Shown here piece after piece: positions 3,701 to 23,723 of a stretch of 35,408 nt of DNA (the stretch's first letter is position 1; the number at the start of each line of letters is the position of its first letter). The position numbers and the translations under genes were made by a program. The notes under the pieces are model-generated. The model did not search any database, was not told the origin of the DNA, and saw nothing but the letters and a program-made list of their open reading frames with translations. The stretch covers positions 1-35,408 of the forward strand of contig LPNZ01008298.1 of the NCBI GenBank assembly GCA_001655205.1, written 5' to 3'. Origin of the DNA: Lenisia limosa (lineage: Eukaryota > Protista > Breviatea).

Positions 3701-4078
3701 TTCTCCGAACAAGACCTCATGCACATACAGCATATCCACAACATGAGAGTCCAAGCTTTGCGGTGGAATCTGCCCGGAAACAGTCAAGATTACAGGTACG
3801 TTGCATACACTATACTGTATATTACTAATATTAAGAAAAGACAACATTACTTAATTTCTGCATACCTCCTATCTTCAGCCGGTGTTTATGAATCAAGCTT
3901 TTTTTGTTGTTGTTTTTGTGTCTGTTGTTTTTGTCATTGTTTTGAGCAGTTATATACACCTATTGTAACAGTTTAGTCATCATCACTTGGCTTGCCATTC
4001 ACCCCACAAAAGCAACCACCCACGGTTTGTCGTCCACTAATAGCAATAATAAACGTACAGTATAGTATATATCATAGA

Positions 4079-4790
4079 GGTTGGTGTTTAAAACCGCGAA
4101 AATGATTAAAACCGCGAACATGATTAAAACCGCGAACAAGCCTTTTTTTTATATACCCCTTTTAATCAAGCTATTCATGACAAAGCCATAACAAGACGTA
4201 ACACTATGAGGTCTTTTCTCATTCACGCATTGAAAACATATAGTAGAAGTTGGAAGCTGGAAATAAGAAAGAATAAAGGAAATAGTAATGTACAACATAA
4301 GAACATAAGGAAACATAAAAGCTACTTCGCCTTCTTCTGTACGGGTGATTCTGAAAAATGAGAAAACGACACTCTCTCAAAGTAACATACTTTTGGCTGC
4401 CTTTTTTGGGGAGGTAGCTTTCTTTTTTGGGGATACCTTGTTTTGACGAACAGCTGGGAGGACATTATCAATTAATCAAGTGATTTTTTAGAATAGAAAA
4501 ATACATGAAACGCAAAGTCAAACCCCTTCTCACCTTGAGCCTCAGCCTTCTTCTTTTTCTTGATATCTTCAAGAAGACGCTCTTCCCAGAAGGCAGGGTC
4601 ATGGGGAATGGCCTGGCTCTCGGTACCGACCTCGAATGGAAGCTCCTCTTCAGTTGCAGGGGCAGCCTCGACAATAAAGATGTCCCAGGGAAATGTGGTT
4701 GGATTTTTGTGGAAGAAACTGACCTCAGCATCAGTGAGAGCTTGATGATAATTGGCAATAGCCATCCAAGCACCCTTCGCANNNNNNNNN
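4079..4790 (-). mobile_element. pogo/Tigger-like element family A, copy 1 (3' TIR plus C-terminal coding part)
   Basis: TIR GGTTGGTGTTTAAAACCGCG with three 18-bp units TTAAAACCGCGAACATGA. Homologous to 5164-5880. Confidence 0.8.
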
Positions 4791-5163
4791 NCGATGATTA
4801 GTAAAAGTCTGTCGTCAGTTCTCGTCACAAATTTACTTACAAATCAAATAAAATGCAGGAAAATCCATAAAATTGTTGTGGCTATCAGACTGTATACTTT
4901 TTATCAAGGGGTAAAATATCACTTTTCTATCAAAAAATTGTCGCTGTTCAAAAAAAAAAAAATCGGGCTTATAAAGGGGAAAAAAATCAATTCACGGATT
5001 TTTTGAAAAATTGCAAAAATGATTTTTGAGCAGTTCTGAACACTTTTCATTTTTTTGAAAAATATCACATTTCCAAAAAATATCACATTTCTGGACTCTA
5101 CAGATATGTAGGTATTATATACATATGTAGGTATATTTATCGATCATATACATGTATATATTA

Positions 5164-6565
5164 GGTGTTTAAAACCGCGAACATTATTAAAACCGCGAAC
5201 AAGTCTTTGTTTTTTTTATGTACCCCTTTTAATCAAGCTAATCATGACAAAGCTGTTTTCCCATTACAAGACGTAACACTATGAGGTCGTTTCTCATTCA
5301 CGCATTGAAAACATATATTAGAAGTTGGAAGCTGGAAATAAGAAAGAATAAAGGAAATAGTAATGTACAACATTAGAACATAAGGAAGCATAAAAGCTAC
5401 TTCGCCTTCTTCTTTACAGGTGATTCTGAAAAATGAGAAAACGACACTCTCTCAAAGTAACATACTTTTGGTTGCCTTTTTGGGGGAGGTAGCTTTCTTT
5501 TTTGGGGAAACCTTGTTTTGACGAGCAGCTGGGAGGACATTATCAATAAATCAAGTGATTTTTTAGAATAGAACAATACATGAAACGCAAAGTCAAACCC
5601 CTTCTCACCTTGAGCCTCAGCCTTCTTCTTTTTCTTGATATCTTCAAGAAGACGCTCTTCCCAGAAGGCAGGGTCATGGGGGGCAATGGCCTGGCGCTCG
5701 GTACCGACCTCGAATGGAAGCTCCTCTTCAGTTGCAGGGGCTTTTTGTGGAAGAAATCGACCTCAGCATCAGTGAGAGCAATTGGCAATAGCCATCCAAG
5801 CACCCTTCGCAGCCTCGGCATCACCTCCTTTAGCCACCTTGATAAGGTCGATAAGCTCCTGGGTATTCAGGATGCATGAANNNNNNNNNNNNNNNNNNNN
5901 NNNNNNNNNNNNNNNNNNNNNNNNNNNNNNNNNNNNNNNNNNNNNNNNNNNNNNNNNNNNNNNNNNNNNNNNNNNNNNNNNNNNNNNNNNNNNNNNNNNN
6001 NNNNNNNNNNNNNNNNNNNNNNNNNNNNNNNNNNNNNNNNNNNNGGTGAGGGAAACAGCTTGACCTGGATACCAGAGTTTTTGAAGGCATTGAGGGTGTT
6101 GGTGGGTTCAGCAGCCTGGTTGTAGGCCTTCAGGGTAGAAAGAAGAACATGACAACGAAGAAGAGCAGCAGAAGAGATACCTTCAACAACCTGGGGGGAC
6201 TTCTTGAGAAGGGATGTGAGAGTGGAGCGGAGGATAGCCTTGAAGATAGCGAAAGTAATGTGATCAAGGGCCTGAGTAACTTGAGAGGTATGGGAGGGGA
6301 GCAGGTAGAGGTCAATGTTATGTGCCTTGAGAAGGGCAAGGGCAACAACTGAGTATCGAGATNNNNNNNNNNNNNNNNNNNNNNNNNNNNNNNNNNNNNN
6401 NNNNNNNNNNNNNNNNNNNNNNNNNNNNNNNNNNNNNNGTTGTACGTTCCAATATACTCCAGAAAGGTGTCACATGTCTAGAAGAGAGTAAGATATCAAA
6501 AATATCGTTTACTAACCTGCCATCCATTAGGTGCGTAAATTGAAGCAGCGGCATATCTGGACACA
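5164..6565 (-). mobile_element. pogo-like family A, copy 2 (3' TIR to mid-DDE domain)
   Basis: Same TIR units. Encodes ..HNIDLYLLP..QALDHITFAIFKA and SCILNTQELIDLIK. Segment 6438-6565 matches 8636-8765. Confidence 0.85.
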
Positions 6566-6569
6566 ATAT

Positions 6570-7900
6570 TAACTCAAAGTGTTTCCTAAAAAGTCGCAAG
6601 ACGCGAACCCAAACAGTTCGATGCACATCTAGCTTTAAATTGACACCGTAAGAAGAGGCAAAGGAACGAAAAAAGACAGTTTTTGTGGGCCGCCTTTCGG
6701 CCATTTTAGTGCTCAGAGCCTGCTTGTGAGACCTTGCCTTTCTTGTGCTCATTTAGTTTCTACATATGATATATTCAAATGACAAATTCATTTTTCGAAT
6801 AATTCAAAAAACCGCAGCGGCTTGAAAAGTAAGACTGTTCTCTCACAGACATGTCTTCTTCTGCATCTTTTGTATTATACTATTAGTTATTCCGTCTTTA
6901 CCTGGCGAGGTGTTTTTGGCATTAGAAAAATAAGACTTTACTTTCGAGGGGCGAAGTAAGGCTTTCTAGAGGTTTTCGTTCCCGAAGTTGTCTCGATCAT
7001 TTTTTGACCCATATAGGTAAGATGGAAGGTGGTATCTTCTCTTGCTTTTTCTTTGATTCCAGAGCTGATCCAGTTTAGGAGGTTTCGTTCATGTGTAAAG
7101 GTTCTGATATTACTTCAACTTTCTATTCAGTGGTCTGAATGTGCCATTTGGTTTCAAGCACTAATGACACAGGCCGATCCGATTAAGAGAAAGGTGGGAT
7201 GGATATGATCTGAAATGTTACCATCGTCATAGTTTACGACCCGCCTTAGACTTATTCAAGCAAGGCTCAGACTTGGTGAAAACTCAGCCCTAATGTGAAA
7301 GTGTGAAATAGCCTGAAAATACAGTCAAAAATGGGAACTTAGTGACAAGAGCCTTATATAACCTGCATTGTAACTCCAACCATGATGAAGCACAAGTCCA
7401 AATAAATACCCGGCAACTGATATCAAGTAAAGTAAATGACTGTAGCGCGCAATTACCTCAAGATCAAATGAAATTGCCGTTCGAAACTACAACCAGACTG
7501 CTTTAGGAGTAGTAAGTACGTGAAACAAACGATGTGGACGGGGAATTACTCAATGTCCATATTACTACACCCCCACTATTCCATTGCTTCCCCCCCGTTA
7601 TTCCGGTTCTCCCTTCAGTGCTTCCTCCCGCTATTCCAATCAATGCTTCCCCTCGCTATTCAAAAGTGTCCTCTACATATACATATAGTATTTGCGAGAG
7701 TGTTACTGATTGATTATATTGTTAGATGGTGTGTCATAAGTTGATCCATGAACCACCAGACATATTTAGTTTGAAGGTTCTTTGTTATTCTCAGTGATTA
7801 TTCCTAGATGTGCGCACCACTGGTTCTACCAAAAGATATCATATTAATTGACCCATAATTTATTAAATACCACCTGACAAGACCATGAATGGAGCCTTAG
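6570..7900 (-). pseudogene. Degenerate non-LTR retrotransposon (APE-type LINE) ORF2 fragment
   Basis: Minus strand VKSYFSNAKNTSPGKDGITNSIIQKM (~6870-6930) matches the KSPGPDG motif preceding LINE RT. Followed by HKKGK and NCLGSRLATF-like segments; upstream ICRGHF* may be a decayed GDFN. Many stops. Confidence 0.6.
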
Positions 7901-8065
7901 CTTTTTTTGTTTCACGATGCAATGACTAAAATAAATTACTTTTTTTCTTTTTTTCAGAAGCACATTGTTAATATACATATTATAACACAAATATCATACA
8001 ATGTACATTTTTCTTACTTATGTACTTTCTACATATTAAAAATATATATGATATCATATCATATA

Positions 8066-10150
8066 GGTTGGTGGTTAAAACCGCGAACATGATTAAAACC
8101 GCGAACAAGCCAAAANNNNNNNNNNAGAAAAGCTTCTGGGTATTCAGGATGCATGAATAAAGGGCAGTGCGGTGGGGAGGAAGGAGAAGAGCAGAAAATA
8201 CTGAAGCAGAGTCTGGGAAATGGGAGGCAAGAGTGGATGGGGTGATGGTGACGGATNNNNNNNNNNNNNNNNNNNNNNNNNNNNNNNNNNNNNNNNNNNN
8301 NNNNNNNNNNNNNNNNNNNNNNNNNNNNNNNNNNNNNNNNNNNNNNNNNNNNNNNNNNNNNNNNNNNNNNNNNNNNNNNNNNNNNNNNNNNNNNNNNNNN
8401 NNNNNNNNNNNNNNNNNNNNNNTGGAGGATAGCCTTGAAGATAGCGAAAGTAATGCAATCAAGGGCCTGAGTAACTTGAGAGGTATGGGAGGGGAGTAGG
8501 TAGAGGTCAATGTTATGTGCCTTGAGAAGGGCAAGGGCAACAACTGAGTATCGAGATGAGTGTCCATCAGTAATCAGCAGGGCACGAGCAGTTGAAGGAA
8601 GTCCAAGAGCCTTGCGGTGAGCCTCCACAGCTGGAATATAGTACGTTCCAATGTACTCCAGAAAGGTGTCACATGTCTAGAAGAGAGTAAGATATCAAAA
8701 ATATCGTTAACTAACCTGCCATCCATTAGGTGCGTGAATTGAAGCAGCGGCATATCTGGACAGAATCTCAGATTCTTCTCTAATTGTCTTCTGATTGAGA
8801 AGAAGAACGGGAGTGATGGGACTAAGGCTTGAACTACAAAGTGAGATTGTGAAAACTTAAAAAAATAGTTGTGTGTCTTTTTTCACAATGAACTCATACC
8901 TGATGGCACCAACAATTAAAAAAAAAAAGGGTAATGTGCTGAATTTGTGTCCTTCTTTGGCATATGCACGCTTAGCCTCCTCAAGAGTAACAACCTTTCT
9001 CTGCTTCATTCCTGAGATTTGAACCATAGTCTCATCCATGTTGGTGATCAAAGATGGGTGGCATTGCTTGATGGCATGTGAAAGTGCAGAGAGGTGTTGG
9101 GTGACTGTTGATAAAGCCCAATGCCCATGTTCTTGAAAATGACACCTTTTGAGATTGATGGCGGTAAACCTCTTGAGCAGCCTAACATTTATTAGTCTTT
9201 TTTTGTTTGGTGATGAATATAATTTTGTTTCCCCCAGATATAATAGTCGTTAATTTTTGAATACTATAAATCACAGCAACAGTATCCCCCGAACAAGCGC
9301 AACAAACCATATTTTGAACATCTCTGATCGTAGGTGGAGTTCTGTCTAAGATAGCATCAAAGATGCTTGAGAGGAGGTTTGGTTCAAGGTCTGAATTGAA
9401 CTTGAGGGGTCTTCCACCATTTTCAGACTGAGGGGATCCTCCATTCTTGTACTTTTGTACAAAAGTGGGTTTAATCTAGAAATAGATGAATCTTGAGCGA
9501 CATTCTATTGTATCACATGGTATTATTTGGAAATATTATCAATATATGCTCAAATAAGAAAGACTTTTCATCAAACCTTTAGGAAGTCGGCAGCTGATCG
9601 AACGGTGATGGTTTGGTTCATCGAATCAGAAATATTAAACACAGATGTAACCTTTTCACAATCGGTCAGGGAGGACCATTGAGGAAAGTGACGCAGTTCG
9701 GTAGTCAGCCAATTCATCTAAATTAATAAGAAGAGCAGACTTAAATAATCTAGTTTACATCAATAGGCGGTAGGGGAAAGGAATAATGAGTTACTATGTA
9801 GCATCTACTTCACTGAAATCTGAAAAGCACAAAGAGAAAGGAAACAACGAAAAACAGTATTTCATCCCATGATAACACCAGTTCAGTTAATACAATTACG
9901 TATTTTATTAAAATAATAAGGATAAGAAGAGGAAAAGGTGCATTCAGAGAGGCAGGAGATGAGGGAGCAAATAACGGTTTTTAGTGATCACCCTCATAAA
10001 TGAAAACTTGTTCACCTTTCGTTACTTTCGCTTCGCTTTTGACTGTAATTATACTAAATACAACAAATGATTCCTTAAACTATTCAAAAGGGGGAAAGGA
10101 AGGGAAAATGGACAAATTAACTTTTAATGATTTGTGCCCAAAAAAATGAT
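8066..10150 (-). mobile_element. pogo-like family A, copy 3, near-complete intron-containing transposase (CENP-B/Tc5 HTH + DDE_1), ATG ~9717
   Basis: GGRPLKFNSDLEPNLL..FSRTWALGFIN (HTH), ITNMDET, NGWQ/TCDTFLEY, LLITDGHSSR, LLPSHTSQVTQALDC. TA-flanked TIR at 8066; no 5' TIR seen. Confidence 0.9.
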
Positions 10151-10186
10151 TTTTTTTTTTTTTTTTTTTTTTTTNNNNNNNNNNAA

Positions 10187-11300
10187 CGGATGGTGAGGGA
10201 AGCAGATGACCTGGATACCAGAGTTTTTGAAGGCAGGGTGTTGGTGGGTTCAGCAGCCTGGTTGTAGGCCTTCAGGGTGGAAAGAAGAACATGACAACGA
10301 AGAAGAGCAGTAGAAGAGATACCTTCAACAACCTGGGGGGACTTCTTGAGGAAATGTGAGAGTGGAGCGGAGGATAGCCTTGAAGATAGCGAAAGTTATG
10401 CGATCCAGGGCTTCCCCCAGATACAATAGTCGTTAATTTTTGAATACTATAAATCACAGCAACAGCATCTCCCTAACAAGCGCAACAAACCATATTTTGG
10501 ACATCTTTGATCGTAGGTGGAGTTCTGTCTAAGATAGCATCAAAGATTCTTGAGAGGAGGTTTGGTTCAAGATCTGAATTGAACTTGAGGGGTCTTCCAC
10601 CCTTTTCAGACTGAGGGGATCCTCCATTCTTGTACTTTTGTACAAAAGTGGGTTTCATCTAGAAATAGATGAATCTTGAGCGACATTCGACTGTAAGATG
10701 GTATTGTTTGGAAATATTATCAATATGTGCTCAAATAAGAAAGTCTTTTCATCAACCCTTAAGGAAGTCGGCAGCTGATCAAACGGTGATGGTTTGGTTC
10801 ATCGAATCAGCAATATTAAACACAGCTGTAACCTTTTCACAATCGGTCAGAGAGGACCATTGAGGAAAGTGACGCAGTTCGGTTGTCAGCCAATTTATCT
10901 AAATTAATAAGAAGAGCAGACTTAAATAATCTAGTTTACATTCAATAGGCGGTAGGGGGAAGGAATATTGAGTTACTATGAAGCATCTACTTCACTGAAA
11001 TATGAAAAGCACAAAGAGAAAGGAAACAACGTAAAACAGTCTTTCATCCCATAATAACCAGTTCAGGTAATACAATTACGTATTTTATTAAAATAATAAA
11101 GATAAGAAGAAGAAAAGGTGCATTCAGAGAGGCAGGAGATGAGGGAAATAACGGTTTTTAGTGATCACCCTCACATTTCGTTACTTTCGCTTCGCTTTTG
11201 ACTGTACAACAAATGATTCCTTCTACTATTCAAAAGGGGGAAAGGAAGGGGAAATGGACAAATTAATTTTTAATGATTTGTGCCCAAAAAATATGATTTA
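10187..11300 (-). mobile_element. pogo-like family A, copy 4, internally deleted
   Basis: 10187-10405 matches 6045-6270; 10410-11300 matches 9230-10150. The junction near 10410 removes about 750 bp containing the first two catalytic Asp motifs. Confidence 0.85.
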
Positions 11301-13204: not shown

Positions 13205-14679
13205 CAGTGCCCGACATAAACATTGGCAAAAAGATTTTTTTGATAACTTTTCGCAATTTCCACTGTTTTTAGTCAAAAAGTAACCATTTTGTACAAAAAA
13301 AGTGTTTTATTTAGTTTATAAACATATCAATCAAATATATATGTAACATATATGGTAACTCCTGGAAGAATTACAAAAATCATATATATTTTGAAAATAC
13401 CTAAATTGGACATGTCAAAACCATCAAAAACATCAATTTAGTCGGTCCACCATTAGCGTCAATAACTGCTTGGCAACGTCTTCCCATGGACGAAATAAGG
13501 TTCTGAGTCTCAGCGGTGGTGGTTTGGGACCATGCCGCTTGCAGTTTCTCCATCATGTCGGCCTCAGATGTTAGTTTGACACTAGATGCACGAAGTTTGG
13601 CGTCCAGAAGCTGCCAGGTATGTTCAATGGGGTTGAGGTCTTGTTGAACAATAGCACGCTTCAGTTGGATATGAGAGATACACATCTGAAATAATTACAA
13701 ATTTTCTTTAAATTTTGTGATAATATCAGAATGATTTTGTCAAGTCATATTAAGAGAACCAGACAATGAAAAACGACTTTATGAAAACAGTTAAAGCTAG
13801 GCTTTTCAAAAAGTACAGGATTACTCAAATCAACTTCGTATTGATGCAATTGAAGCTGAAGGTATTTTCGTCACTGAGATGCTTATGCGGCGCCGACTCA
13901 ACAATGCTGACTTCTATTGTTTCAAAGCTCGTAAGAAGCCATGGATCTCCCAAAAGAACCGTCTACACCGTCTTCAGTGGTCTCGTGAAAGAGTGAACTG
14001 GACCAATGCTCAGTGGTAGAGTCATGTGGACTGATGAGTCCAAGTTCCAACTTTTCAAGCCAGATGGAAATACCCGCGTGTGGAGAAAGAAGGGTACTGC
14101 CTGGGATATCGTTCACATCATCCCAACTGTCAATTAGGTGGACGTGTTCTCGTCTGGGGTGCAATCGGCAAAGGAGGCGTTGGCAAGTTGTACCAGATTA
14201 AGGGCATTATGAATAAAGAAGTGTATCGTCAAGTCAAGGATGTATTACCACTTCGAAATTGTTTAACCCAACGATAGACACTTCGTTGTGAAATTTCATG
14301 GACAGAATTCTTGATAATTCTCCAAATTTTGGCAGGATTCAAGCCAGCTCGGCATAAACCGCAAACTTCCCCCTTAACAATATGGTGACTAACTGATGAA
14401 TATTTCCCCATATTTGAGTGAAAATGTAAAATATGGAATGAAATCAAAACAGAAAACTGTTATACTCAGGATGATGAAGATATTCATGTTAGTATTTTGG
14501 AAAATATTATATATTTCAAAAAGTGCAGTTAGAATTTCACAAAAAAATGGTCCAAAAAAGTGCAAAATAAAAATTTGCGAAAGGTCACCCTATTAATTTT
14601 GTATTTTCTGATTTTTTTAAAAAATATAAAATCTAACACTTTTTTGTACAAAATGGTTGCTTTTTGACTAAAAACGGTG
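13205..14679 (-). mobile_element. Tc1-family transposon relic with the middle of the transposase inverted
   Basis: Left end TA|CAGTGCCC. Inner TIR 13261-13310 is inverted at 14635-14679. N-terminal HTH on minus (14411-14232), KARKKPWISQKNRLHRL..VMWTDESKF..GRVLVWGAI on plus (~13750-14232), QQDLNPIEHTW..SMGRRCQAVIDANGGPTK on minus (13738-13438). Confidence 0.9.
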
Positions 14680-14747
14680 TAGGTATTCCACGCTATTCTG
14701 AAAAAATATCATATGATATAATATTACATATGATATATATATATATA

Positions 14748-15644
14748 GTTAAAACCGCGAACATGATTAAAACCGCGAACAAAAAGGAGGCTTNNNNNNN
14801 NNNNNNNNNNNNNNNNNNNNNNNNNNNNNNNNNNNNNNNNNNNNNNNNNNNNNNNNNNNNNNNNNNNNNNNNNNNNNNNNNNNNNNNNNNNNNNNNNNNN
14901 NNNNNTCAGTAAAAACACTGATTATGGGCCAAGAATGTCCCTGCGATAATGTAAAGACGTTCTTGCACCATGAGATTTGATTTTTTCCACTCTTGAGTAA
15001 CCTAGAGGCATTTAAGTAGAGAATACGAGACAAATTGGGCAAAAAATGAGCGTAAATTACCGATAAATGGGCGAAAATATGATAGAAGATGTTAATAAAT
15101 CAAGCGAATTTAACTCTTACCTTTTGTGCCGTTCCAGAACGGTAAATGGGTTATTGACGCAGTATATACTTTAATCAGACGTCTATTTCGTCCATTGGCT
15201 CTATTATAGAGACTGAACAAGGAAAACTCTTGAAAAAACCGTTACAAAAGTTGACTTAAATACCTCAAAACCACTACATTTTCTCCAAAAATGGACTTCA
15301 GATTCGAATTCTCCTTAAAAAATCGCGTTTCTATGGTGGGGCACTTTAATAGGCTCAAAATGCTATTATTCTGAAAGAGGGGGGTTTCAAAAAATATTTT
15401 CGCGTAAAAGAAACTGGGTGACCCTGACCGGGTCGATTCTGATCAAAAGATCTTTTTTTTTCGATTTTTTTATCTCCTCTTTTTTTTTTTCTTTTTGCTC
15501 ATAATTTCTTTGTTTTGATGTTATTGATAGTCTAGTACTCAAAACTGCCGAATTTCACACTAAAAAGGGTGTTATTGAAGCGATTTATGTCGATTTTTGG
15601 CTTGTTCGCGGTTTTAATCATGTTCGCGGTTTTAACCACCAACC
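14748..15644. mobile_element. Non-autonomous or deleted element bounded by inverted family-A TIRs
   Basis: GTTAAAACCGCGAACATGATTAAAACCGCGAACAA at 14748 and its reverse complement ending ...AACCACCAACC|TA at 15644. An N gap at 14793-14905 lies inside. Confidence 0.7.
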
Positions 15645-15676
15645 TATATTATATATTAGTATATATAATTATTATA

Positions 15677-15798
15677 TGCTCGAGTTCCTAAACTATGTCG
15701 TTAATTCGAACTGTTTTAAAGGGGAATAGCTGATTTGGCGATCGTAATTAATTAACGACATTAATTCGAATTAACAACAGAATTTTGGACCTTGAGCA
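15677..15798. mobile_element. 122-bp TA-flanked MITE
   Basis: TA|TGCTCGAGTTCCTAAACTATGTCGTTAATT ... AATTAACAACAGAATTTTGGACCTTGAGCA|TA, imperfect TIRs. Confidence 0.7.
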
Positions 15799-16316
15799 TA
15801 TGATATACTATATGAAAGGTGACATTGAGTTTCAAAAGTTGATCGTGTCTTCAAAGTTGTCAACTTCACTTTTGCCTTTTTCCTCCAAGCTTGATACCCA
15901 CTCTTCCCGTTCTCCACCCGCAACCATTTTGAAACAGGAAATAGAAAAGAATGCAACAGGTAAGGGCAAAAGGGTTGATGAGCTGACATTAATTGGTTAG
16001 ATTATTAAGGCTATCTAAAGTCGAAAAGACCAGAATTTGCCAGAACCATATAAATAGGACTTGTTTAAAACGCGGAGAGAGACAAAGGTGAAATGTTGAA
16101 GCAGTTGAAAAACACTATCAGAAGACTTAGTACATCTAGCCCAGTAGAATGAACCCCAATTTCTCTTACAGGATAACAATGGTCAGCCAACNNNNNNNNN
16201 NNNNNNNNNNNNNNNNNNNNNNNNNNNNNNNNNNNNNNNNNNNNNNNNNNNNNNNNNNNNNNNNNNNNNNNNNNNNNNNNNNNNNNNNNNNNNNNNNNNN
16301 NNNNNNNNNNNNNNNC

Positions 16317-16391
16317 TGCACTCAGTCTCTGCCCGGCCTACTGCTTGTTGGAAACTCCAACGGCTCGATAGAGGTCCTCAAGCAGGCATAA
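16317..16391 (+). CDS. Possible last exon of a WD40-like protein
   Basis: PGLLLVGNSNGSIEVLKQA* resembles a WD40 blade. Upstream sequence is in an N gap; a candidate 28-nt GT-AG intron lies at 16144-16171. Confidence 0.3.
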   Translation, partial: CTQSLPGLLLVGNSNGSIEVLKQA

Positions 16392-17109
16392 ATTCTAAGG
16401 TTTATCTTTTTTCGATTGATACCCCCGAGTGGGGGGATGTTTTTTTCTAGTTTTCTACGCACTCCATTTGTTCGATTTTGTGGTATTGTTGTTAGCCAGT
16501 GTATTGTATTTATTCGAGATGTCGAGATGTTGATGCATTTCCTTCTATTTCTTGGAAGCGGGGGTGAGGGAAGAACAATTTGGAGGCCTTGGTAGCGGGG
16601 GATTCTCTTGCACTTGCTTGAAACTTGAGAACGCGGAAAAGTCGGTTTGACAACTTTCCGGGTCTGGAACCAGAGAGGAGGACCCGGCGGCGGATCGGGA
16701 AAAATGTACTTGCTAAGAAGAATAAACACACTTGTTTCAATAACTGGTCATAATCACATACCTCCTTTTTGGGACCTCATTCGACCATGTTACACTGTTC
16801 TGAAAGTGGCTCTCTATTTTCATAGTTGTAGTTAAAATCACACATTATACTCGAAACCGGTATTTTTTAAAAGAAATTACGATGTAATCAGCAAAATAAG
16901 ACCCCTTTTTACACTGGTACAAGTTCCCCAACCCCAGACCCCAGGGCCACCCCCCTGTGGTTTTGGTGGTTTTGGTGTGGTTTGCTCGTTTGCTTTGGGT
17001 TGAGTTGTTGAGTTTGTGTTCAGGTTGTGTTCAAAGTGTTCAAGTTGTGTTGCAGTTGGGCAGTTGGGTCCGAATTGGGTGTGAGTCTGTGAGTTGGGTT
17101 TCAGCAAGA

Positions 17110-17771
17110 ATGAGAACCAGAGCAACATCTCAGTTTCGTATTTTTTACGAAAGAGGAGATCTGCCAATTGCTGTTGAGCATAGAGCTCTTGGTAATAAAG
17201 TGTGCCAACTTTTTTTGTTATTTAGATTCAGTGGAAGGTCGAAATTGAAAAGCTTGATTATCACCATTATTTGCCAATATTCTTTGATGGGCTGAGGGAA
17301 ACAGATGTACCAGAATGTTTTATTATTATTTAGGAGCCATACAAGTTCCTTGCAAGACAAGGAGTTGAAGATTTGCTCAACAATGGGGGGCAAAAGATTG
17401 AGCTTGTGATTCCTCAACTTATCATTCCATTGAAACAGGCATTGAATTCAAAAAATATTCATATCATTTGTTCAACCCTCCAAGTTATTCAACAACTTGT
17501 TCTGAGTAGTGAAATGGTGGGAAGATTACTGGTGTCGTACTACAGACAGCTACTACCTGTTTTCAACGTTTTTAAGAACAGTAATAAAAATATTGGTTTT
17601 TTTTCAAAGTTCTTATTTGGGGACAATATTGACTACAGTCAACAAAAACGAGAAAATGTTGGTGACTTGATCCAAGAGACCCTTGAGCTACTTGAACTTC
17701 ATGGGGGTGAAGACGCTTTTATAAACATTAAGTACATGGTCCCAACATATGAAAGTGTTGTCCTCAACTAA
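17110..17771 (+). CDS. PACRG: Parkin co-regulated gene protein (axonemal inner-junction protein), 3 introns: 17200-17225, 17307-17333, 17596-17619
   Basis: Spliced product [136 protein letters not shown]. An upstream exon is not excluded. Confidence 0.97.
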
Positions 17772-19419
17772 TCTTTTGTATATTCTTCAATGTAGAAAAA
17801 ATGTGATATTTTGAGCAATTTTTTTTGAAAGAGGGTTACACCATACTGAAATGGAAAGATAACAGTGTATCGGAAACAAATCGAAACAAACTGGCCACTC
17901 TCTACATAAATTGATAAAATAAGTACGTTTCAACCCCAAAAATTGCCAAACAAAAAAACATGGTGATGTGATCACTAGACATTGGTGGTTAGCCAGTACC
18001 CCCAGCTGCTGCTGGGTTCTCGGCACTTCCCTGGACGCCGGCGGGTATATTCTCGGAAAATTAGTCTCTTCCGCTCAAGTTACTTATTTCGTAGTTTTTA
18101 CACTCTATATTTCTAATTCCCTTCTCAGCTAGTTCTCTGGGCTTGTCATAAAAGACATGTTTGGTTGGGGAATCCCTCTTCATGACTTCCCTATCGTATT
18201 CTGTTGTTAATTGTCAACACTTACGTCAAATTCTACAGGCTCTCCTCCCTCACGATTGTTTCCTTTGTGATCTCTCCTTTTTTTCCTAACCTCATCACCG
18301 CAGGTCATTGAGGGACCTCAATTTGAGGACCCGGTCCCCATATGCTTCGATGGAGGTTGTTTAATGCCTAGACTTCCAGGACTGCATTCTGTAGACCACG
18401 AAGGCAAGTCACCCTCTTCCCCATCGACTCAAATGTTATTCTTTCGTTTCTTCAAATGTTACTCCACCCCCGCCAGACCTTTTGTAATCAATATTATATC
18501 TTTGTGATTAATTATAATATTTGTATTATCATACAAACATGTACCTTTCTCTCTCTACTCTGATACGTTAGGTTCAAGTAGCTCCGCACCTTTTGCCGAA
18601 TTGCGTGCATGGTGCACCGTGACTCCTCCAGACAGAAGGTCCTCTTTCTAAGCGATGACTATGTTACTCGGCGAGAATGGTGAGAAAAGACTATGCTTAC
18701 CTGGATTTTATATTTAGTATTCTTTATTCATTTTTTTTAGCTCCGAAGATAGCAACTGACCGTCAAATTAAATTTTTCAATGATCTCCTCAAGAAGCTCG
18801 CTGAAACGTCGCTAAAAGTTAGTTTTCAGATGTTTGGGGTGTCACTTTTTTGTGTGCTTATATGAATGGATTGGAGCTTTTGTTGATAATATTCCCGGTA
18901 GGCACATCGTGGATCGAAAGAGCCGTTCGCTTATAAGCTGCCTCATTGACGTCTTGGACACAGCGCGGGCTCTGATGGGGCAGTTTGGTATCAAAGGTTA
19001 GCCGTATCAAAGTGGGGTTAAAGCGCCTTTTTTAGTAGCCAAGTAGGACAAGGATCAGTTTAAGTCGGTTTTTGGGAATGGTCAAATATTTTTTTTAAAA
19101 AAAGGAATTCTCATTTTCTTGAGTAATCACCCTTCATTTTCTTTTCTCTCTGTACTCTTCATTTAAGAGGTATCAGTCGCCTAACCCATATCCAAACAAC
19201 AATACTTACAACTTGTATATGATATATAATATAGATTTACGCATCAGAAGTAAGCTGAAAGATACACTATTTGAAAAATCGTTCTTTTCTGATCTTGCCC
19301 CTCTTCCCCTTCTCGGCAGTCTTTTAGAAATAGAAAAAGGGAAGACTTTTTTTGCAAGTATCGAGAAAATTCCCAAATAAGCCATTTAATTTAACCCCGC
19401 TTAAATGAACACTTATAGT

Positions 19420-21480
19420 TTTAGAAGAATCTGAAGGCAACAGAAACCGGATGGGCAAGCTTGTGCAGTTCAAGGTCCCTGCCACAGAAGGCACAGTCGC
19501 AGCGTCTACAGCTAATGCCAACAGTGCGGTGACGTATGCTGTCGTACGTTCCCTTTTGGCTTGTAGCGTTCTTCCGCTTGACGATCCGAGCTTCGATGCT
19601 GACGCGGATGGAGTTTACATGGGAATAATCTTCTCTTTTGCGTTTGCTGTAGCAAATGATACTTCTGCTAACACTTCAGACTTGTTTAGGTAGGTATCAG
19701 CCATTCTTCCGTGATTCCTTTTTTTAAAAAACTTAATCAACTAGAGATGTAATTGTCTGGTTTGTATTACTTGTGTGAATGATGGAGACGTGCCATCGTT
19801 TCGTGTTTTATGTTTTTCCTGTACCAGTAGTAATGTTAATGTTTGTGTTCTTCCATTTCAAGAAGCATTGTGTAGAGTTCAATTCCANNNNNNNNNNCTA
19901 CATGAATACTACAGCGCTAAATATTATTGATGAATCTGCTCATGTTGCCCCTTCCCAATACTTTTTGCGTCCTGCAAGCAATGGAATGATCGCCTTGTTG
20001 GCGAACTCAATATTGTCACGATCTCCACCCTAAGGCAGGTAACACTCAATAAAGCCGAGGATATGTCAGCAAAATCCCCACCCCCCCCCTCTACACAATC
20101 TATCTATTGGACTTACAAAAACTATTTACCTTGATAGCAAGCATGAAATTGGTAAAGTGCAGGGAAAGCAAGCGGCCTGAAGGGGTATCCCGAACTGAGT
20201 AGCCACTGGCCACATGGGCAATGGGGAATTTGGCAAAGTGGAGTTTTGAAAGTCTTGAATTAGTATAATACACATACAGAACTTTGTTAGTGACACTCTA
20301 GCAGTATTAAGGATCATCACCATCCTGTCATATTTCGGCATTTTGTTCCCGTCGAACTCCATAGGCCCCCCATTGGCGGAGCAGACATTGAAGAGCAAAT
20401 CTGGTTACATCAAAAAAGGAACCTTCGTATTCTCTGCAGATACCTGCCCCAAAGTGCCAAAGGGTGTGGAAGAGCCCCAAGCCCGACTTTGTCAAAAAAA
20501 AAATAACTTTAGTGGGCTGGCACACATCCTTGCCCTGGACAACCTTGGCGGACTCCTCAATTGACATGGAGCCCACATCACCAATTCTACTCTATTAGAC
20601 ACCGCCCCCAATGTAATATGAATACCTACCCCCCAACCGGATGGGAAGTGACCCAAGGGCGGATATCGATTCCGCAAGGGATTTGATCAGCTGGTTGAGC
20701 TTGATTGAGCCTGGGGAAAGATGTGGTTATATCCAAAGAATGAAACAGCATACCGTTAATTGTCCCTTCATTCTCATGAATGAGAGCTTGGTTGCGAATG
20801 AGGGTTTGTTTTGAGCTTTGGGTGTTGAAGTAGTGAGCTGAACAATTACTCTTTGGAATCCGATAAGAGTATAACAATTACGTTGAGGGTGATAAAGTTC
20901 CAAAATCATACGATATAATGGTAAAATATGATGAGTGATAAACTATTTGTGTGATCTTCTAAATATACTAATAAGCATAATTACACAACCAACTTTGAAA
21001 TGAAGCTCTGGTTCACATTCCAAATCATTAGTGTCCTTTATTTCACCATCTTTGGGCATCTGACTTGTTATGAAGGATGTAAATGGCTTGAATAATGATC
21101 ATTATACCAGTGACAATCCTTTCGCTTAGTTATTATTATGAAGTTGGTTGTTGTCATGTAGGTCGGTTGGTGGTGGTGGGGAGCAAGGGGAGTGAAAGTG
21201 CCTTTAAAAAGTAATACACCCCCTACTTTGAATTTTCTGAACCAGCCTTTGATATACCCTGTTATACAGCCTCACGGCTGAATCACTGTTCTTTTTAGAA
21301 TTTGTTGAATGTACAGTCCACAAATTTATCCTTGTTTCTGCTAATCTCTATAGCCACCGTTGACAAAGCTACTCTTGCCAAAGAAGCTGGAGATTATCTC
21401 AAAACACTCGGTGAAGCGACCATCAAAGTAAGACTTGAGGTCATGATGCTCTCTTGCCAATCATAATGCTGCATGAGGCT
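19420..21480 (-). pseudogene. Second, heavily decayed piggyBac-like transposase
   Basis: Minus-strand remnants in expected order: FEIISSFF, LYHPQRNCYT-LIGFQ..QNKPSFATKL, KVIFF(D), GGDRDN..RKKYW, and a C-terminal SCRRCDCAFCGRDLELH Cys/His cluster. Many stops and frameshifts. Confidence 0.5.
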
Positions 21481-23456
21481 CCCACAAGAACCTCTTATTT
21501 TCATTTTAGAAATATCTCCAAAAAGTCCAACTGTTCTTCAAATATGTCAACAGAAAGCGATGCGCTAGTCTGGTAGATTATATACAATATTTATTTCTTT
21601 GCGGGACCGGCAAACCCCTCTAAAACCCAATCATTTTTTATAATATTTTTTTTTTGCTTTTTTCTTAGTTTAAATCTCCTTTTCAGCATATTTTCCACCT
21701 GTTTGATCTCCAAAATGGGAATATTCAATTATGGTCCTGGTTATAACGAAGAGTTAAGCCTCAAATGGGCTCCCCCCCAATAATCATTGTTTTTATTGTG
21801 TCTCCCCCCCACACTCAAAATGGGCTTTTTTATGAGCATTGTTTTGATTGTGTTTTCTTTGTAGATACAGACCCAACAAGTAATCAGAGTAGAGACAACA
21901 AACAAAACATGTCAGCTTGGACAAAACTCATTAAATATAATATGTATCCCAATCATTATTCGAAGAGAAACATGTATATTCTACCATCAATAGAGCACAA
22001 AACAAAAAAAAATAAGACCCCCATTTCTTCTTCTTCTTTGGGTTAATAGCCCTGGCCTTAGCTACACGGCACTTGGCATTAGTTGTCAGTTCCTTGACAC
22101 CCTCCACATTCTCAAAGAAAAACTAATATAATCAATACAAATTTTATAAACCTTTGGGCCGCAGGAGAGGCCATGAGCAGAATCAATTCGTTTTTTGCGA
22201 AGCACAGTCTCCTTTAGGTCATCTTCGGCAGCAACGAGTTCGCCCGGCTTCAGTAAAAAAACGCTCTCGCCCTACTCAAATGATGTAAATCAATACTAAA
22301 TACAAATATTTACTGGGGATAAGAACTATGGCATAGAAAATAAGACCAACAACGACACCACAAAAAACCTACCAGCAGCGTTCATGCTCCGGACAAGGTC
22401 CATTCGGTGCAAGAATCTTGAGAATAATGAGGGGTGGGGGAGGGGCATATCATTCACAACCAGAAAACTGAGCATACCAGTAGCCTCAATCTCAGCCTTC
22501 GCCTGACCAACTGCCTGTTTCCTCTCAACATCTAGTATCTCTCTCTCCTCCGAGCACCGTTCCGCCAATGATGCCATGCTACGACGTCGGCAGATTTCGA
22601 CAGCGTGGCATGTTTTCAATGACGGAAGCTACATCAGTCAACATCGTTAGCCACCACAAATCCAAAACTTGAAGTTCCTTATTATTTAGAAAAATTAAAC
22701 TGTGTGAATTGGTACAAATTTGTTCTCCGCGAGAGACATAAAAGGTGCTTACCTCTTCTGGAAGAACCGATAGCGGACTGTCCGGGCGAAGCCTGAGATC
22801 GTTTTGATCTTTGACCAACAACAAAATGTCAAAGGCGTCCACACCATCACAATATGAAGAGATATTGGATTATAGTATTTCCCAATCCTTCTAATACATA
22901 ATATACACATTATATCTTACAAACCTTCGGCGGCAGAGTTGGCCCTTCTGACTATGGGCCTTCAAAAGCTCAAATCAAAGGTTCCTTACTTTCCAACATC
23001 ATTGTGGTCAACGTTATCGCCTGAAAGAAGTCAACGGAGGCTTTCGAATAAAAATTGACAACATAGTTGTGTGTGGCTTCATGTCTCAGGGTCCTCAGGA
23101 GATAGGCTGGAGTGTGGGATTCGATAAAATGAGGAATGATATCCTTTGATACAGCATCTGTGAATACTATCTCTACACTAATAACACTGAACTAATAAAA
23201 TAATCAGCTTATATCTATATTCTCGTTTTTCCACCGGTTTTCCTGTTTTCTTTCCTTTTTAATATTAATTAATCTTTTTTCGCCAAAAGGAGTAAGAGGG
23301 GTGATTTTTGGCAAAAGCAGGAAAAGTGGTGGGGGAACGCCGCCAGATCCGTAACCAGATCCCTGGATCCCATCAATTTCTGGGAGTTTCAGCCCCTTTG
23401 GGGTTTGGGTTCAGTTTGGGTTGTTTAGTACATGCTTTCCAGAAAAACTGAATACT

Positions 23457-23723
23457 ATGGCAAGGAGGAGAAGAAAAGCCCAATCTTCTGGTAAAGTTAA
23501 GAGCCCCGGTTTATTGCAATTGTTTGATTGTCCATGGTGTAATTTTGAAGCCACTGTTACTACTTACTTGTTTGTTTTTGCTTTTTTAACTTGAAATTAT
23601 TCAACTAAGATCGGCAGTATTGAATGTTCTGCTTGTGGAGAGTGCTTTAAATGTGCTATTAGTGAATTATCTCAACCAATTGACGTTTTTTCTGAATGGA
23701 TAGATGTTTTTGATATCCAATAA
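23457..23723 (+). CDS. ELF1: Transcription elongation factor Elf1 (zinc ribbon), 80 aa, one intron (best fit 23570-23593)
   Basis: MARRRRKAQ..LFDCPWCNFEATVTTYL|NYSTKIGSIECSACGECFKCAISELSQPIDVFSEWID..* has two CxxC pairs and the conserved L..PIDV(F/Y)S.WID tail. Missed by the ORF track. Confidence 0.93.

Follow-up and report, generated by a model that had tools for sequence, protein, structure and literature searches.

Few rules of nuclear splicing are as firm as the terminal AG, and the conserved flagellar gene PACRG of the breviate Lenisia limosa raises the question of whether a very short intron can be removed without it. Near the end of this gene, at 17596-17619 of the window (the whole stretch of DNA analysed here, 35,408 nucleotides), lies a segment of 24 nt that starts with GT and ends with TG. 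The preliminary description of this DNA offered two readings of the segment: an intron with a TG acceptor or an intron of 3n length that had lost its AG and become exonised. The call of an intron stood in our analysis, and between the two readings the evidence leans to the first. We consider the segment to be probably a spliced micro-intron of PACRG in which TG is the sole productive acceptor, with a probability of about 0.75. We lean to the TG acceptor because a sibling element in the ELF1 gene cannot be read through, because the available RNA run misses about the number of sequence words that an excision of 24 nt predicts, and because the element keeps all intron features.

The PACRG gene and its 24-nucleotide insert

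The PACRG gene occupies positions 17110-17771 on the plus strand of a repeat-rich, gap-containing eukaryotic scaffold with a GC content of ~37%. The last exon matched the Pfam ParcG profile PF10274 (E = 5.3e-52, 177 bits at a cut-off of 22) and 16 PDB PACRG chains (best E = 8.9e-56). By both the profile and the solved chains, the host gene of the 24-nt element is a member of the PACRG / ParcG family. Its layout is as follows:

17110-17199, plus strand: exon 1, ATG at 17110, 30 codons; spliced translation colinear with Pygsuia PACRG
17200-17225, plus strand: intron 1, 26 nt, GT..TTATTTAG, phase 0, T content 0.54; removal joins GNK to IQWKV as in orthologues
17226-17306, plus strand: exon 2, 27 codons; spliced translation colinear with Pygsuia PACRG
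17307-17333, plus strand: intron 2, 27 nt, GT..TTATTTAG, phase 0, T content 0.48; removal joins RETD to EPYKF as in orthologues
17334-17595, plus strand: exon 3a, covered by the Pfam ParcG and PDB PACRG alignments
17596-17619, plus strand: candidate micro-intron, 24 nt, GT..TTATTTG, phase 1 in the Gly codon of GD
17615, plus strand: putative branch-point adenine (CTTAT), 4 nt before the terminal G
17620-17771, plus strand: exon 3b, stop TAA at 17769-17771

Both canonical GT-AG introns are required to join the PACRG exons as in orthologues. The nearest relative in the protein collection was a PACRG from Pygsuia biforma, also a breviate (TSA GCRY01; species assigned through PMC7449678). When the 24 nt were removed together with the two canonical introns, the spliced protein of 194 aa aligned with that of Pygsuia over 193 residues with zero gaps and 79% identity, and it was likewise gap-free against the other best matches. 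Excision restores the conserved motif, as the preliminary description had stated.

The PACRG start lies ~25–30 residues later than that of Pygsuia, and the N-terminal motif PPxAGAFKxR of most orthologues is absent. An upstream coding exon in the GT-rich ORF that runs from 16957 before the ATG was considered and rejected, as the ORF is of low complexity and contains nothing PACRG-like. GT-rich repeats of the TTGGGT type precede both PACRG and ELF1 (16927-17104 and 23385-23425, respectively), ending with GGGTT(T)CAG shortly before the ATG; they may represent a shared promoter or 5'-UTR element. A C-rich run, CCCCAACCCCAGACCCCAGGGCCACCCCCC, was also found 5' of PACRG, at 16927-16955. Upstream of the PACRG ATG, an RNA contig of the poly(A) run X2 (see below) lies on 16974-17097 with a depth of 87.

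The element itself, GTTTTTTTTCAAAGTTCTTATTTG, has 24 nt, keeps the reading frame, and contains no stop codon. Retained in the mRNA, it would add eight residues to the NKNIGDNIDY loop (GFFSKFLFG replaces G). Excision of 17596-17619 joins AAT ATT G to GG GAC and brings back the invariant loop, the resulting junction word being AATATTG/GGGACAAT. The coordinates and the sequence of the GT-TG insert had been given exactly in the preliminary description, and its account of an in-frame, stop-free, T-rich insert was also correct: the translation is clean, and the T fraction is 0.62. The mean T fraction of the PACRG CDS is 0.29, no 24-nt window of the CDS exceeds 0.50, and the three other tiny introns (the two of PACRG and the ELF1 element) have values of 0.48–0.67. 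The 3' end of the element, TTATTTG, is the TTATTTAG of both canonical introns minus one A, precisely the difference noticed earlier. The canonical PACRG micro-introns resemble the element in the GT start, T-richness, and TTATTT core, but they are 26–27 nt long vs. 24 nt and end in AG, whereas the element ends in TG. Its adenine stands at position 20 of 24, i.e., 4 nt before the terminal G (CTTAT), whereas the A nearest to the 3' end in both AG introns of the gene lies 5 nt before the last base (-6), one base further out. The intron call has good support in the composition of the insert, the GT start, the 3' motif similar to that of the gene's own introns, the typical length, and the unique position in an otherwise invariant loop.

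The insert is real DNA and not an assembly slip, as its bases are identical in three assemblies. For the DNA-type run X1, a Logan contig covers 16889-18055 without gaps, the 24 nt included, and an ENA contig assembled independently (L001, ERZ3820729) shows no difference anywhere in PACRG. Over 2.7 kb, the ENA contig differs from the window at just two positions (15567 and 16524). It is a separate assembly because the gap of 124 N in the window (16192-16315) is filled in it: positions 833-945 of L001 supply 113 real bases for it. At a 5% share, no TATTTAG variant was listed in the assembled contigs, which drop rare variants. A repeated mobile element was ruled out, since the window contains no second copy of the 24-mer even with three mismatches allowed. 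Elsewhere in the window, the DNA word depth of run X1 reached 4000–8700 at 14600-15800 vs. ~40 over PACRG, and the region 14600-15800 is a very high-copy repeat in the sample.

Loop length and intron positions among orthologues

The preliminary description had suggested a comparison with orthologues, and in this comparison the eight-residue insert was missing from 11 of 11 aligned relatives. An eight-residue gap at the insert site was present in all four PDB alignments listed (of the 16 PACRG chains matched), and the top-ranked rows of 209 stored PACRG proteins had 7–8 gaps at the site and no insert. A protein-based scan of JGI metagenomes yielded relatives at ≤67% identity. Here, 78 of 80 loci showed the plain eight-residue gap, one had the same gap placed differently, and the loop of the remaining one was just two residues longer. 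On these alignments, the loop is of fixed length in about 290 orthologues, among which the eight-residue insert is unique to Lenisia.

Introns in the PACRG genes of Globomyces (L002), Rozella (L005), Amphimedon, and Dimorphilus were mapped by exact spliced alignment (loci L002-L005). A phase-1 intron in the codon after FKNxN was common to the four genes; it is located 9 nt upstream of the Lenisia element and has the same phase. An intron at the exact Lenisia site was found in none of these four opisthokont genes (chytrid, Rozella, sponge, and annelid). These positions give no ground for calling the element an ancestral intron: no mapped orthologue has an intron at the site, and the four genes have one 9 nt upstream instead. 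It may represent an intron gain or slide. Two further observations concern the gene structure. Intron 1 of Lenisia PACRG precedes another intron, conserved in the same phase, by 12 nt, and a third conserved intron, between PQLIIPIK and NAL, is absent in Lenisia. Near-miss intron positions of this kind in PACRG could result from intron sliding or independent gain. The mapped introns of Rozella and Globomyces were 26–33 nt long and ended in AG in 10 of 10 cases; small intron size alone does not entail non-AG ends.

Splice sites, RNA evidence, and competing readings

A direct repeat of 4 nt, TTGG, occurs on either side of the element, exactly 24 nt apart. Because it flanks both ends, five excisions give one and the same mRNA: TT..AT, TG..TT, GG..TT, GT..TG, and TT..GG. 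A GT donor (17596-17597) is present in just one of them, GT..TG. From this GT, the AG acceptors further on would give an intron of 14 nt, an intron of 43 nt with a frameshift, or an intron of 57 nt that deletes residues of the conserved motif, and so the productive cut is limited to the position after TG. None of the AG-ending alternatives yields an intact PACRG, and a gap-free protein needs the GT..TG excision or its TTGG-slid equivalents. The AG nearest to the TG end lies 19 nt downstream, inside the exon, and its use would frameshift PACRG; by analogy with the human model, this AG may help in early recognition of the intron.

Considered by class, the element has the GT 5' end of a U2-type intron at 17596-17597 and lacks the AG 3' end, with TG at 17618-17619 instead. 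The body is T-rich, and the adenine of CTTAT, 4 nt before the terminal G, is a putative branch site. A U12-type intron was rejected: the donor is GTTTTTTT, without RTATCCTT, and the TCCTTAAC branch motif is absent. U12-type introns share with the element a tolerance of non-AG ends (AT-AC), but the element is far below the known size of U12 introns, lacks their motifs, and is not a member of this class.

The sequencing runs with this DNA (2016) include the DNA-type run X1 and one poly(A) metatranscriptome RNA run, X2. Forty sampled 31-mers of 17334-17772 were looked up in the contig index of each run. All the sampled exon words (40/40, 1.00) were present in the DNA run X1, and 35 of 40 (0.88) in the RNA run X2. 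If 24 nt are excised, 54 of 409 words are lost and 5.3 of the 40 sampled words are expected to be missing; 5 were. The probability of exactly five missing words is 0.195 for the 24-nt cut, 0.122 for the 43-nt cut, and 0.062 for the 57-nt cut; under retention, it is 0.105 with one SNP and 0.172 with two SNPs. The word deficit favours excision without proving it, being also compatible with one or two differences or with a coverage hole in the RNA contigs.

No RNA contig fell on PACRG when contigs of X1 and X2 were placed on 14600-20500 at a likeness threshold of 95%. This likely resulted from the record filter or from the 95% likeness demanded of a contig with three small skips. The protein collection yielded no transcript-derived spliced PACRG of Lenisia among candidates of 80–254 and 123–392 aa, and the only near-identical protein in those searches was an unspliced ORF of 132 aa from an ENA DNA contig. 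A scan of JGI metagenomes for the exon flanks with a gap of 0–24 nt found neither the spliced nor the retained form.

The strongest competing explanation is that of a dead intron, which lost its AG (e.g., by loss of one A from TATTTAG), is no longer recognised, remains in the mRNA, and adds a tolerated insert of eight residues to the protein. Retention would be viable and would escape nonsense-mediated decay, as the element is 3n and stop-free. Only eight residues would be added, in a loop between two helices and in a stretch modelled with low confidence. The AlphaFold model of the last PACRG exon, built from a 12-row alignment, is weak (mean pLDDT of 60.5) and places the insert between the two helices; an insert of this size in the loop seems physically possible, which keeps exonisation alive. 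A junction-spanning read, contig, or protein was obtained neither from the RNA contigs nor from the protein collection or JGI, and TG is not used as a splice site in human AG>TG mutants (PMC2374985), both of which agree with exonisation. Several observations speak against it. The loop length is invariant in the orthologues compared, and the insert is hydrophobic and F-rich. Retention as such predicts zero missing words, whereas run X2 misses 5 of 40. The ELF1 twin, which has the same ends, cannot be retained, and every intron feature is still present in the PACRG element, with no drift. We consider exonisation unlikely.

In a second alternative, TG would be a weak acceptor, and spliced and retained mRNA would be present in similar quantities, with two PACRG isoforms eight residues apart in length. 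This would be compatible with the nature of the element, since 3n stop-free introns are the class in which retention carries no penalty from nonsense-mediated decay, and also with the word share, since assembler contigs keep only the major path and a minor retained form would escape the count. No observation points to two forms, though, and to judge by the words that the RNA contigs lack, the retained path would be no more than minor, which makes such mixed use quite improbable. A third alternative is that the insert has nothing to do with splicing and stems from an error in sequencing or assembly, from polymorphism among strains, or from recent insertion of 24 bp as repair filler with TTGG microhomology. 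This would accord with the flanking 4-nt repeat and its spacing of exactly 24 and with the lack of an intron at the exact site in the four opisthokont genes, but it is very improbable. The three assemblies are identical, chance would have to account for the GT start as well as for the T-richness and the intron-type 3' motif, and a repeat of only 4 nt does not exceed chance and is in part a consequence of the G/GT and G/G splice contexts.

The ELF1 element and a possible rule for the 3' end

The preliminary description had likened the PACRG element to a case in ELF1, and the likeness in length and boundary type was found again: both elements are 24 nt and GT..TG. The ELF1 gene is arranged as follows:

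23458-23569, plus strand: ELF1 exon 1, ATG start, 37 codons and 1 base (split Leu codon), CPWC zinc knuckle
23570-23593, plus strand: ELF1 24-nt GT..TG element, GTTTGTTTTTGCTTTTTTAACTTG; read-through gives a stop codon
23594-23723, plus strand: ELF1 exon 2, stop TAA at 23721-23723; Elf1 profile and PDB matches

Exon 1 alone had no database match. Exon 2 matched positions 41-77 of the 79 positions of the Elf1 profile and residues 45-80 of solved PDB Elf1 chains, and the 37 codons of exon 1 with the split codon fill the first 38–40 profile positions. Because read-through meets a stop codon, the ELF1 element must, on its predicted reading frame, be removed for the gene to be read. The two elements differ in this respect: retention is intolerable in ELF1, whereas in PACRG it keeps the frame. 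The sole adenines of the ELF1 24-mer are at positions 19-20 of 24; as it contains no others, an adenine that serves as its branch point must lie 4–5 nt from the 3' end.

If the TG acceptor is used as we propose, the PACRG element would be a spliceosomal micro-intron with a GT start, a T-rich body, and an A five bases from the end, and it would be cut after the terminal TG. The 3' cut would be set by position, at the first G ~4–5 nt past the branch adenine, and not by an AG dinucleotide. Pairing of the terminal G with the 5' G, known from spliceosome structures, would be preserved, with the -2 position relaxed. Counted from the last A, the four tiny introns in the window read A-TTT-G, A-CTT-G, and, twice, A-TTT-AG, and from these four cases we infer that a cut following the first G past that A fits all of them. 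More generally, the spliceosome of this breviate would need no AG for its shortest introns and would use the first G at a fixed distance, with TG as a sole constitutive acceptor, a generalisation for which we see somewhat better than even chances. In the PACRG element, which is 3n and stop-free, the accuracy of splicing would be upheld by protein function alone, without nonsense-mediated decay.

Ultra-short spliceosomal introns are known from Paramecium (~25 nt), Stentor (15–16 nt), and chlorarachniophyte nucleomorphs (18–21 nt), and these end in AG. The element shares with the ultra-short introns of protists and fungi the length class, the T/A-richness, and the very short presumed distance from the branch site to the 3' end. 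It differs from them in its end, theirs being AG, and it is also 3n and stop-free, a class of introns that is depleted in Paramecium.

TG acceptors have been described in 36 human genes, in which TG is never the sole 3' splice site and needs an AG within 28 nt (PMC2374985, Szafranski et al. 2007). Human GT-TG introns with TG as an alternative 3' splice site were also reported by Parada et al. 2014 (PMC4176328). As is proposed for the PACRG element, the human GT-TG introns are U2-type with a normal GT donor and are cut following TG (PMC2374985). They have a pyrimidine at -3 and a purine at +1; the PACRG element has T at -3 and G at +1. The difference concerns the AG: human TG needs an AG partner, whereas the 24-nt intron of PACRG would have TG as its only productive acceptor. 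Our literature search found no paper on the intron ends of breviates.

If the proposed reading is true, the choice of a 3' splice site could be settled by branch-point distance and a terminal G alone, and such a genome would allow the second catalytic step to be studied in a natural setting. Gene prediction that admits no introns other than GT-AG would leave a spurious insert of eight residues in PACRG and truncate ELF1. The PACRG case is informative because retention keeps the reading frame; unlike frame-breaking introns, it separates "cannot be spliced" from "must be spliced".

The window was also scanned for the motif GT..TTATTT(A)G, which flagged 9551-9576 on the minus strand. This segment was rejected as a further micro-intron, being more likely the start of an ordinary AG intron:

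9476-9576, minus strand: likely AG-ended intron of ~101 nt in a pogo-like transposon gene

Two copies of the pogo-like transposon gene (DDE_1 match) are located on the minus strand, at 7980-9800 and 10080-10950. In each copy, GTCTGCTCTTCTTATTAATTTAG (23 nt, GT-AG) stands directly before the ATG, at 9718-9740 and 10899-10921.
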